A stretch of DNA of 64,000 nt from Oikopleura dioica (lineage: Eukaryota; Animalia; Chordata), in the NCBI GenBank assembly GCA_907165135.1, contig OU015566.1, positions 12,710,001 to 12,774,000 of the forward strand. The letters are read 5' to 3'. The position numbers and the translations under genes were made by a program. The notes under the pieces were generated by a model that had not been told where the DNA came from, ran no database searches, and saw nothing but the letters and a program-made list of their open reading frames with translations. This document shows positions 42,315-60,722 of the stretch, piece after piece (within the stretch, counting starts at the first letter, position 1; every line of letters begins with the position of its first letter).

Positions 42315-45300
42315 ATGCTTTTACCAGAGATATTATTCCTCCTGGGCCTGGCCCAGGCGAATTTTCAAGGCGCAAAGAGAATGTTTGAACATAAGTTAAG
42401 AGAATTCTAGACCAACAAGTAAGTTCTAAAGGGTTTATTTCGACTGGCAAAATGCCTTATTTTCTAACATCAAAAAGTCGCTGGTCTGTACCCGCCCATA
42501 CGATGAGATTATCAAGCTCCGGGAATTGAAAAGCTTTGAGCCTCAAGAATGGAGCTGGCTCGTCAAAATAGGCGAATGTCATGGCGCCCTTGTTTCCAAT
42601 CAATTCGTTGTGACTGCTCCTGCGTGTTGCTCCGGTGCGTCTGGCAAAAGTGTTATTCTTGCTGATAGGAATACAAACAAAGTCGACAAGGTTATCATCA
42701 ACATGGAATCTGATGATATTAGAGATGAAATCTGCTTGATCAAATTGAAGACACCAGTTGCTTATTCTAACAGAGTCTATCCTATTTGCACGGATGACAC
42801 AAACGGAGATGTCTCAAGAGCAATGAGAGCGTTTTCCAAGAATAATCTGTTCGGCAATACAGACATGGCTGTAGATTTACTCCCTCCAGTTATGTGCCCA
42901 CGACTTGAGGACAACAAAGGATCCACATGCGTTGTGGGAGCAGGAGAAAATTCCTTCACCGATGGTTTTTGCCCTAAAAATCTTGGAGCTCCGATCGTTT
43001 CAGTCCAGAAAAAATCTGTAATTCTCGTCGGAATAATCACACATCCGTTTGGAGATTGCAAGCATATTCAAGGATTTGCGACGCAAATTGCAAAGGTGGA
43101 AAAATGGATTAAACAGAACATCAAGTTTCACGAAAACTTTTGGTCATTTACCAGCGCAGAAAGATTCCAAGAAGAAACGACTGGTTTTGAATTGAGCGGC
43201 AAGTCGATGCTCGCGGAAATGGGACAAAATCAATGTAAAAGCGAAATTGATGGGTTCGGTCGCTCCGGCGCTAGTTTAGTCCGCTCTCTTCAGAACAAAA
43301 TCGTCCTTGACCAAATAACATCTGGAGAGATCCTCGCTGAAGAGTCCGAATTCGCTGGAAAATTCCCACCTCGAGATATGCGAACAACCGAGTTTTGGGA
43401 AGACTTTGAGCAGCGAGTGGTTGGATCGAATATTGAACCACAAGAGAACCCGTGGACTTGGATGGTCGATTTTGATGGTACTTGTGCTGGTGCCCTTATT
43501 TCTGCAGAAGTTGCTATCACTTCTGCCATGTGCTGTGGATTTATCGACCACGATACAGCTTATATTGGTGGATTTGCTGAACGAGAATCAGGAGTGAAGC
43601 GAACTATTCGTCAGAAGACCGTTTCACCTGACTTCAATCAAGGAAAGCTTCGCAATGACTTGTGTCTAGTGAGTTTTACTGAGCCACTAGAACTCGGTCC
43701 TAATCTGAGACCGATTTGTTTGCCTTCTGGTGGATTTTCTCTTGAAGATGGAGAACATCTGTTCATCGCTGGCTGGGGATCAAGGACTGTTACGGGCGCT
43801 CTGTCCGATAATTTGAGCTCAGCAGCACTCCCTGTTGTTTCTTTCAAAACTTGCGAAAAAGAATATGGTGATCTTGGCCTTGAGTTGGATAATAAAGCTC
43901 ATTTCTGCGCGAATAGTCCAAACGGAGGAATCGGCCCTTGTCGAGGAGATTGGGGAGCACCGAGTGTCGTGATGCGCGCTGGTCAGCCTGTTCTAGCTGG
44001 AGTTGTCAGCTTTGGCAGAGGATGTGGACACGTCGCTTTCTCTTCTGTTTACACAAATCTTGCTTCTTACCACGACTGGATCGTTGCAACTGGAAAAGAT
44101 ATGTCCGTAGTACAGACAACAACGACCTCAACAACCAGTACAACCATCACTACCACAACAACAGCGCCAGAAGCTGTTAGTCTTGATGAAAACTTTACCG
44201 GAGTTACTGGAGGCTCTTGTGAGTCTGTTTTTGACACAATGTTCTCATCAACCGGACGATCGTCTATTGCAAGCGATGTTCCTTTTGAAATCGGTCAAAA
44301 AATTTCCTACTCTGATTATTTCTTGAATCAAGAAAGACGAAGCGCTGGCATTTTCGGTGGCCGACTGGTTGGCGGAGAAAAGGTAGAGGAAAGCGGTGAG
44401 TGGCCGTTTGCTGTCAATATTGCTGGAAAATGCGGTGGTTCACTGATCGGAAGAAGATGGGTAGTTACTGCAGCGCATTGTTGTATCGATGAAATTTTGA
44501 CAAACACTTCTTCTATAACGATTGGAGCGAATTTTTTGAGAGATGCCACGGAAGATCAACTCTTTGCCGCGGAAGATTACGTTTCTCATCCAAGTTTCAA
44601 CGAGTACAACTACAACAATGACATTTGCGTCATCAAACTCGACCGAGACGTTGAATATTCTGGCGCTGTTTCGCCTGTTTGTTTGAATGAAAATGTAGCG
44701 CACAACAGTGGCTTTCAGAATTTTATCGCTGGATGGGGTCAAACAAAAGCAGGAGGCGTTATGAAAAACTTTATCTCAGAAGCGTCGGTTGAATCGCTCA
44801 GACGATCAGAATGCAAAGAGCTTGTCCCCGATGAGTTCTTGAAAAAGAAAATGTTCTGTTCTCGCGGAAAAGGTGGCTCGCTCGTCAGAACTTGCGATGG
44901 AGATGCTGGCGGGCCTCATGTTTCTTGGAGCAACGGGTCACCAGTGCTTACTGGTGTTCTCAGTTGGGCATCTGACTGTGGCTCGGATGATGCTTTTTCG
45001 ATCGTTACCAATGTTCAGGATCATCTTGACTTCATTGCTCACGCTGTTGCTCAGCTTGAAATTTTCGAGCTTGAACCCTTTGTCGACGAAGTCCTTGTTG
45101 ACGAGTCATCATTGGTTAGCAATGTTGATGTTTACAAGTGTCCGAATCCACTTGATCTTTTCCAAACTATTCGACCAGCAGATACGCCCGCATCCGCTAC
45201 CTGGCCATGGAAAGCAGTTGTGAATGATTACTGCGCCGGTGTCTTGATTGGTGCTTCTCAGGTCTTGACTACAGCAGACTGCTGCGGAAACCAGATGAAA

Positions 45301-60300: not shown

Positions 60301-60722
60301 CAACCCAACGAGTACTCAAGCAAAGTGCTTCATTTCGGGCGGACAGGTTCGCTGGTCCCCGTCTACGCTCTCTTGTCGAAAGCCTGCTGCTACTTCTGGT
60401 TCGTAAAATTTAACAAGAAACCTATCTTGACCTCAATTTCAGCCCCTCAATCAGCAATGACAGCTTGCGGAGATCCGAGAAACAACAGTGCATTCTCCTT
60501 CTCTGGCCCTGTGCAATTCGACTGCACGCCAAAACAATGCGGGTATGCTTAAAACTATTTTTAAAAACTGCATCTCACGTTTTTCCAATTTTAAGATTCG
60601 GCTGCCCAAGCGGCTGTACCGCTGAATTCCAAGGAAGAAAATTCAAAAAGGTCAAATGCAAGGCCAAAAAGGGTCGAACAAAGTGGAACCCAAAAAGCGG
60701 CTCGTTCAACTGCATCTGCTAA
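42315..60722 (+). CDS. Giant secreted polyprotease: signal peptide, 17 trypsin-fold (S1A) domains, EGF/cbEGF modules, Thr-rich linkers, three C-terminal Cys-rich modules (about 5,400 aa)
   Basis: ATG at 42315 ([15 protein letters not shown]), then a 37-nt intron (42395-42431) into the 1522-aa ORF. Nearly all breaks between the large ORFs could be bridged in frame by hand with short GT/GC/GA-AG introns (the joins near 57.75 and 58.5 kb are less certain). 17 copies of WP[WF]...C.G.LI...T.AxCC; GDSGGP in six domains; stop at 60722, AATAAA at 60752. Confidence 0.85.
53354..53832. mobile_element. hAT-like MITE (479 bp) inside the exon encoding protease domain 13
   Basis: 14-bp TIR CAGGGTTCTAAATC, 8-bp TSD CATGGAGG (53346-53353 / 53833-53840), body of TCGAC/GTCGA pentamer arrays. 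It splits CAGYME|[13 protein letters not shown]. Confidence 0.94.
57102..57290 (+). repeat. ACN trinucleotide repeat encoding the longest poly-Thr (mucin-like) linker of the polyprotease
   Basis: [37 protein letters not shown]...; shorter Thr runs near 44120, 48380, 49110, 52700, 54070, 58410 and 60090. Confidence 0.85.

Follow-up and report, generated by a model that had tools for sequence, protein, structure and literature searches.

The characterised polyserases contain 2-3 serine protease domains of the S1A (trypsin) family (PMC1435904), and the same number has been reported for the insect polypeptidases (PMC11172050). Here we describe a gene of the appendicularian Oikopleura dioica which, as read from the genome, encodes a secreted protein with 17 such domains. 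The gene lies on the forward strand of contig OU015566.1 (assembly GCA_907165135.1), within a stretch of 64,000 nucleotides (contig positions 12,710,001 to 12,774,000) that was analysed as a whole and is called the window; all positions given below are those of the window. An initial annotation of this DNA had considered 17 domains exceptional, which is true of the comparison with characterised proteins but not of the comparison with databases. In a census with phmmer, in which the twelfth domain (the domains are numbered D1 to D17) was searched against 1.84 billion representative proteins and multi-domain proteins were ranked first, the top match was an uncharacterised protein of the gar Lepisosteus oculatus (XP_069044036.1) with 14 S1A domains in 4,066 amino acids. 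A likewise uncharacterised cluster member from the cunner Tautogolabrus adspersus (KAM6963464.1), which is labelled LOW QUALITY, has 18 domains in 5,350 amino acids, and all others among the census matches listed had at most 8 matched stretches, for instance 4 for the X. tropicalis ovochymase cluster (P0085). The number of 17 domains is extreme and is undescribed in the literature searched, but it is not unique among gene predictions. Our searches found no literature linking Oikopleura with polyserase, ovochymase or pseudoprotease, and nothing relevant on proteases in oikoplastic single-cell data.

The number of domains was reached by three routes. A tblastn search with a single-domain query, a hidden Markov model (HMM) of the family and an xxHCC-like motif each gave the 17 trypsin-fold units claimed initially, all on the + strand within 42.5-59.7 kb; no further unit was found by any of the three in the rest of the window. 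In the two long stop-free frames of the gene, Pfam reported Trypsin (PF00089) repeatedly and no other family. In the Pfam scans of individual domains, which covered D1-D5, D7-D10, D12-D15 and D17, PF00089 matched D1-D5, D7, D9, D10, D12 and D14 tested whole and D13, D15 and D17 via exon pieces, while D4 was marginal, at 24 bits, and D8 had no Pfam match when scanned whole, so that the Pfam domain count proposed as a check agrees for all domains tested whole except D8. When D8 was compared with a leave-one-out HMM made from the other 16 domains, it scored 65 bits (E 3e-22), with almost the whole domain aligned; in the same procedure D4 scored 47+14 bits and D1 90 bits. The AlphaFold model of D8, with a predicted local distance difference test (pLDDT) score of 74.5, matches S1A structures, which is supportive and not independent, because the input alignment was mostly of trypsins. 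For D10 the pLDDT was 89.6, and its nearest solved relatives are TMPRSS11D, matriptase and enteropeptidase, which are transmembrane serine proteases of type II (TTSPs; E about 1e-36). The 17 domains are only 17-35% identical to one another, so that no collapse or expansion of repeats is involved. A single gene that carries one signal peptide and 17 S1A domains in tandem is well supported by the sequence and by homologues.

Most of these domains are unlikely to be enzymes. The complete triad His57/Asp102/Ser195 is found in D10, D11, D12, D13, D15, D16 and D17, and in six of these, namely all but D12, it is accompanied by Asp189 and the motif GDSGGP; these six are predicted to be intact enzymes of trypsin-like specificity, and activity of D12 is doubtful. 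The other ten domains (D1-D9 and D14) appear to be dead, i.e. serine-protease homologues, judging from the alignment, in which His57 is replaced in D1, D2, D4-D9 and D14 (kept in D3) and Ser195 in D1-D8 and D14 (kept in D9). The initial annotation, which suggested a self-contained proteolytic cascade, did not weigh that only six, perhaps seven, domains can be catalytic, and any such cascade would therefore be at best a six-enzyme one on a largely non-catalytic scaffold. An activation site of the type Arg/Lys↓Ile(Val/Leu) is found together with Asp194 in 12 domains (D2, D3, D5, D7, D9-D11 and D13-D17), six of which are dead; D1, D4, D8 and D12 are without both, and D6 has Asp194 only. This arrangement allows a test of the role of activation cleavage in domains that are unable to cut. 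The features of the gene are collected in Table 1.

Table 1. Positions, within the 64,000-nucleotide window, of the gene, its predicted domains and modules, and selected introns (↓, activation cleavage site; /, splice junction)
Feature	Position	Strand	Basis or remark
Start codon ATG	42315	+	gene model
Predicted signal peptide, 15 residues	42315..42359	+	judged by eye; sole one in gene
Exon 2, 4.6 kb: D1-D5 and first half of D6	42432..47051	+	stop-free frame 42430-47091; Pfam Trypsin, 6 stretches
D1-D9, nine putative pseudoprotease domains	42490..50031	+	alignment, residue table
GA-AG intron within D6	47052..47120	+	restores EEI/RPLCL, Cys122 motif
Exon 3, 4.35 kb: second half of D6, D7-D10, most of D11	47121..51472	+	stop-free frame 47110-51495; Pfam Trypsin
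D10, D11, predicted active trypsin-like	50128..51938	+	His/Asp/Ser, Asp189; K↓IVGG and K↓IIGG
D11/D12 intron	51825..51915	+	GC-AG or GA-AG; weakest junction, exact ends uncertain
D12, doubtful activity	51990..52751	+	triad present; CDTNSGAP (Thr193, Asn194); no activation site
D13, predicted active	52824..54112	+	split by 43-nt intron and MITE intron
MITE-like insertion, removable as GC-AG intron	53353..53839	+	487 nt, within D13
Acidic Ser-Gly repeat, candidate glycosaminoglycan attachment region	54137..54271	+	Pfam Serglycin E 0.0017, below cut-off
EGF-like six-Cys module upstream of D14	54333..54437	+	weak Pfam matches only
D14, putative pseudoprotease	54613..55432	+	Gln57, Leu195; Pfam Trypsin 4.9e-36
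EGF-like module and two calcium-binding EGF modules, after D14	55439..55765	+	Pfam EGF_CA 8.1e-14, 2 stretches
D15, D16, D17, predicted active trypsin-like	55934..59743	+	K↓IING, R↓IVGG, R↓IMGG; Asp189
GA-AG intron	56726-56887	+	gene model
C-terminal tail: three Cys-rich sushi-like modules, polybasic stretch, poly-Thr run	59729..60719	+	
Cys-rich tail modules	59729-59854, 60200-60376, 60466-60719	+	no Pfam family
Polybasic stretch in C-terminal tail	59993-60070	+	
Stop codon	60720-60722	+	gene model
AATAAA	60752..60757	+	30 nt past stop codon

Two pairs of cysteines set the array apart. All 17 domains show an unusual 'x-C-C' after the His57 position and carry an extra Cys59 together with an extra Cys104. 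When 438 other S1A domains were collected, 32 had both of these cysteines, 406 had neither and none had a single one; across 454 S1A domains the two were invariably present or absent as a pair, and the pair is absent from the solved TTSP structures that were aligned. The group of domains with the pair takes in metagenomic relatives, one domain of the O. dioica paralogue CAG5109935.1 (P0148) and the clusters P0093, P0092 and P0086, and the pair marks a clade of trypsins that are marine and probably appendicularian. The 17 diverged domains arose by ancient internal duplication of a trypsin with this extra pair. The second pair is formed by a cysteine in the linker before the domain, in a C-x-S-P-F-like motif, and Cys122 of the domain itself. 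The initial annotation had given every domain a Cys-containing linker, which applies to 16 of the 17; D14 is the exception, and it lacks Cys122 as well. This co-occurrence supports the classical tether between propeptide and Cys122, and the same logic was proposed earlier for polyserase-3 (PMC1435904).

The remaining parts of the protein agree with what had been noted initially. There are nine poly-Thr/Ser runs of at least 8. Seven belong to inter-domain linkers, the D15-D16 linker having two, and the others are found in the spacer between D13 and the EGF-like module and in the C-terminal tail, with one run each. D14 is indeed flanked by an EGF-like module before it and by an EGF-like module and two Pfam EGF_CA modules after it, and the three Cys-rich modules at the end of the protein were found, without a Pfam match. 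Apart from the signal peptide and poly-Thr, there is no hydrophobic segment of at least 18 residues and no membrane segment, and neither CUB nor LDLa, SEA or SRCR was matched when exons 2 and 3 and a set of the 3' exons were scanned with Pfam. From its sequence, the protein is read as secreted, with extracellular modules.

We consider it fairly probable that this single Oikopleura gene encodes a secreted, mucin-like polyprotease of 5,417 residues, whose units are tethered like beads on a string. The protein would be made as a string of zymogens, and since the Arg/Lys↓Ile sites fit the specificity predicted for the live domains of the same protein, auto- or cross-activation would be possible. 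The activation cleavage would switch each unit to its mature conformation, while a disulfide between linker Cys and Cys122 would keep every unit tethered, resulting in one covalent assembly in which O-glycosylated poly-Thr spacers may keep the units apart. The dead N-terminal domains might serve as non-catalytic modules for binding or regulation, and the acidic Ser-Gly stretch, the EGF and calcium-binding EGF modules and the basic Cys-rich tail might anchor the protein in the extracellular matrix or in mucus. The alternative that survives best, which we nevertheless regard as unlikely, is that of a true polyprotein precursor, in which cuts in the linkers set the domains free as proteases and pseudoproteases, as in polyserase-1 and ovochymase. 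Polyserase-1, which yields three independent domains, is a precedent (PMC1435904), the 12 domains preceded by Arg/Lys↓Ile sites would fit it as well, and convertases might cut at basic clusters, of which KKRKKNKK in the D4-D5 linker is an example. However, the linker Cys is upstream of each activation site and goes together with Cys122 (the Cys121-equivalent), both being present in 16 domains and neither in D14, and the two-chain pairing of S1A proteases keeps the propeptide attached, so that a domain could be released only by a further cleavage, upstream of its linker Cys.

A more far-reaching version of the tethered arrangement can be put forward, which we think quite unlikely to be correct in all its parts: an ancient appendicularian assembly line for proteolysis, covalently tethered, in which nine conserved dead domains provide six live trypsins on the same glycosylated chain with exosites or cofactors, and in which the protein is self-activated at its Arg/Lys↓Ile sites and processes matrix or food proteins in the house or the feeding mucus. 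Among locations for the protein, the appendicularian house is the most attractive one, and the gut or feeding mucus, or reproduction, are equally possible; roles in house building or renewal, in hatching, in the egg coat or as a cascade, all of which were raised in the initial annotation, are speculation. Regardless of location, the protein is a natural case in which to study the function of pseudoproteases that are joined to live proteases in one chain.

The coding region, with start and stop codons in place at the ends 42315 and 60722 assigned initially and AATAAA after the stop, can be read as one gene of 22 exons and 21 introns encoding 5,417 amino acids, in agreement with the earlier estimate of about 5,400. 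The model was made by dynamic programming (first version 5,281 amino acids), and the junctions in D6, D13 and D15-D17 were then revised with the domain profile and homologues. The two long stop-free frames are followed on their 3' side by shorter coding pieces on the + strand, and the majority of introns are GT-AG introns of 37-96 nt. After splicing, more than 16 kb of coding sequence are free of in-frame stops, and no Met with a signal peptide occurs at internal domain starts, both as had been claimed. That one open reading frame (ORF) can hold two or more S1A domains is evident at the genomic level, where single exons hold 5.5 and 5 of them. Because these two exons are joined by an intron inside D6, D1-D11 cannot be separated into genes without an in-frame stop. 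Introns interrupt D6, D11, D13, D15, D16 and D17, which consequently need splicing to be whole, and a single exon holds the end of D15 and the start of D16.

The GA-AG intron in D6 is also found in the Norwegian O. dioica scaffold FN655973.1 at about 4670-4738, where the donor side reads AAG/GAATGG compared with AAG/GATTGG in the window; since it has the same position in both Oikopleura lineages, its GA donor has been conserved despite saturated synonymous divergence. A canonical GT donor at 51797 was considered for the D11/D12 intron and rejected, as the residues that it would remove are kept in the homologue P0020. The insertion in D13, which resembles a miniature inverted-repeat transposable element (MITE), is characterised by inverted ends of 14 bp, CAGGGTTCTAAATC, with a duplication of 8 bp, CATGGAGG, and its excision restores the reading of D13 through GYME. 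It is positioned just upstream of the catalytic-Ser motif of D13. Reads of three RNA runs at 90-95% identity were found on the MITE, which indicates that the genome has, or transcribes, further copies at other places.

Several observations weigh against a single gene for one tethered protein. Non-GT donors are required in 4 of the 21 introns (GA, GC, GC, GA), and several splice pairs are possible at the D11/D12 junction. RNA reads were aligned over 51700-57699 from three bulk oligo-dT runs with the species label (X6-X8) and from run X1, and no transcript spanning the gene was seen over this interval. The three bulk runs had practically no coverage beyond poly-Thr codons and the MITE, and the joints that they listed were repeat artefacts. 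No full-length protein of the locus was found in a collection of 15 billion proteins. Furthermore, AlphaFold modelled the linker of D10 and the Cys within it with a pLDDT <50, so that it is covariation and not structure on which the two disulfide assignments are based. In runs X6-X8 no reads at 90% likeness or more fell on the exons within the aligned interval, which means that either the gene was silent in those samples or the runs came from a diverged lineage. In an oligo-dT marine metatranscriptome, short contigs were found on the exons, two of which stop matching at the predicted exon ends 54548 and 56723, which is a hint of transcription. The claim of a single gene is upheld by the sequence and the homologues, and not yet by transcripts.

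These observations could also be accounted for by two or more adjacent genes, for example in an operon trans-spliced with a spliced leader, with the break in the intron-rich 3' part, for instance at the D11/D12 junction or behind the Ser-Gly tail that follows D13. The frame is indeed closed by stops at 51845 (past D11) and 54302 (past the Ser-Gly region), and the non-canonical donor required at D11/D12, the missing spanning transcript and the reference annotation, which consists of a partial model only, would all be as expected. We nevertheless judge this to be very unlikely, since neither stop is followed by a Met with a signal peptide, all other interdomain junctions are intra-exonic or spanned by GT-AG introns of 40-61 nt, D1-D11 cannot be split, and the relative P0020 has the C-terminal helix of D11, the linker and D12 within one ORF.

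The reading as a single tethered polyprotease is consistent with the conservation of the array. The Norwegian scaffold FN655973.1 is colinear with D1-D8 at an amino-acid identity of 79-83%. In every dead domain compared between the two (D1-D8), the proportion of nonsynonymous differences (pN) was 0.06-0.17 and that of synonymous differences (pS) 0.7-0.85, with synonymous sites saturated; pN being far below pS, purifying selection on the dead domains is strong. Marine metagenomes, those of Tara included, contain ORFs of 34-44% identity that run colinear with D1-D4 (P0014), D4-D6 (P0118), D5-D11 (P0002), D11-D12 (P0020) and D12-D13 (P0158), and P0002 is one ORF of 5.9 kb that spans seven domains. 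A tree pairs the domains of the window 1:1 with those of the metagenome relatives, with which, at about 40% identity, they have in common the dead-site substitutions S195W in D2, S195A in D3, H57F in D6 and H57T in D7; the active site of D5 is intact in a metagenome relative. Therefore, both the array and its dead-first polarity are old, and with its 1:1 orthologues and conserved dead active sites, the protein would be larger than any other multi-S1A protein for which there is evidence that selection has maintained it over the long term. The weakest alternative, a decaying tandem array, assembly artefact or pseudogene whose long frame is fortuitous, is extremely improbable, as the catalytic residues missing in ten domains, the poor recognition of D4 and D8 by Pfam and the MITE inside D13 are outweighed by the long stop-free coding sequence, the low mutual identity of the domains, the dead-site substitutions kept in distant relatives and, above all, the selection data, which already contradict it.

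The best database match to the protein is CBY40535.1, described as 'unnamed protein product, partial [Oikopleura dioica]'; this partial model of 1,509 amino acids is all that the current Oikopleura annotation has for the locus, which we flag here for that reason. It omits about 560 residues of the colinear frame, with the start of D3 joined to the end of D5, and FN655973.1 has a 1-nt frame shift within D2 at about 1640-1660 (about 43990 in the window), in the SFGRGCGH region. The frame shift and the gap are probably sequencing or annotation errors on a small unplaced scaffold. Downstream of the gene, the window contains two ORFs, at 61040-61507 and 61904-62473, that are alike, both starting with ...NNNFIVFAMQKKV(R/K)KR... 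and continuing with Arg/Ser/Gly-rich sequence, and that look like a tandem duplicate of a small gene.

Among the known systems, the ovochymases (Xenopus ovochymase/oviductin, ovochymase-1/2) are extracellular multi-S1A polyproteases like the Oikopleura protein, but they have about 3 domains instead of 17 and no orthology was seen. Ovochymases have CUB domains interspersed between the protease domains, a feature that defines the family, and in this respect the Oikopleura protein differs, with no CUB match in the exons scanned. Polyserase-1 (TMPRSS9) and the TTSPs provide the nearest solved catalytic domains, whose Asp189 confers the same trypsin-like specificity that is predicted for the live domains described here. 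In contrast to the N-terminal membrane anchor and the LDLa/SEA-like stems of TTSPs, the Oikopleura protein has a cleavable-looking signal peptide and no membrane segment.

From O. dioica itself, the house proteome (Hosp et al. 2012) lists two multi-trypsin oikosins of the serine-protease type, 24g and 24h, which belong to a family with expression in the giant Eisen cells (PMC3390340) and are the sole lead towards a role in the house. These proteins (HE774620 and HE774621; 149 and 172 kDa) are annotated as serine proteases, and oikosin 24h also has calcium-binding EGF modules and is described as 'ovochymase-1-like' (PMC3390340); the two may be the window gene, fragments of it or paralogues. Oikosin 24h has a signal peptide of its own, for which the SignalP cleavage scores peak at position 20, whereas cleavage of the window protein is predicted after residue 15, and neither oikosin was matched in the protein searches with the window protein.

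In size and domain number, both fish predictions are comparable to the Oikopleura protein, and the gar protein XP_069044036.1 (P0006) is also like it in its mixture of intact and degenerate active-site motifs, with the motif AAHC in 5 and GDSGG in 4 of its 14 domains. Neither it nor the cunner protein (P0155) is orthologous to the window protein, however, as they are only 26-29% identical to it and lack Cys59 and Cys104; furthermore, 14 of the 17 adjacent repeat pairs of the cunner protein are 93-100% identical, so that it may be a recent expansion or an artefact of assembly or annotation. Human polyserase-2 (PRSS36) and polyserase-3 differ by their 2-3 domains, by the lack of poly-Thr linkers, of EGF and calcium-binding EGF modules and of the Cys59-Cys104 pair, and by an identity (about 30%) that is generic for S1A. 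They are nevertheless secreted and have S1A domains in tandem within a single polypeptide, as is predicted for the Oikopleura protein, and they have a Cys before each activation site, proposed to be a tether after cleavage, which corresponds to the linker Cys described here (PMC1435904). Finally, polyserase-2, with one active and two inactive domains, combines live and dead proteases in the same chain (PMC1435904), as the Oikopleura protein appears to do with its 17.

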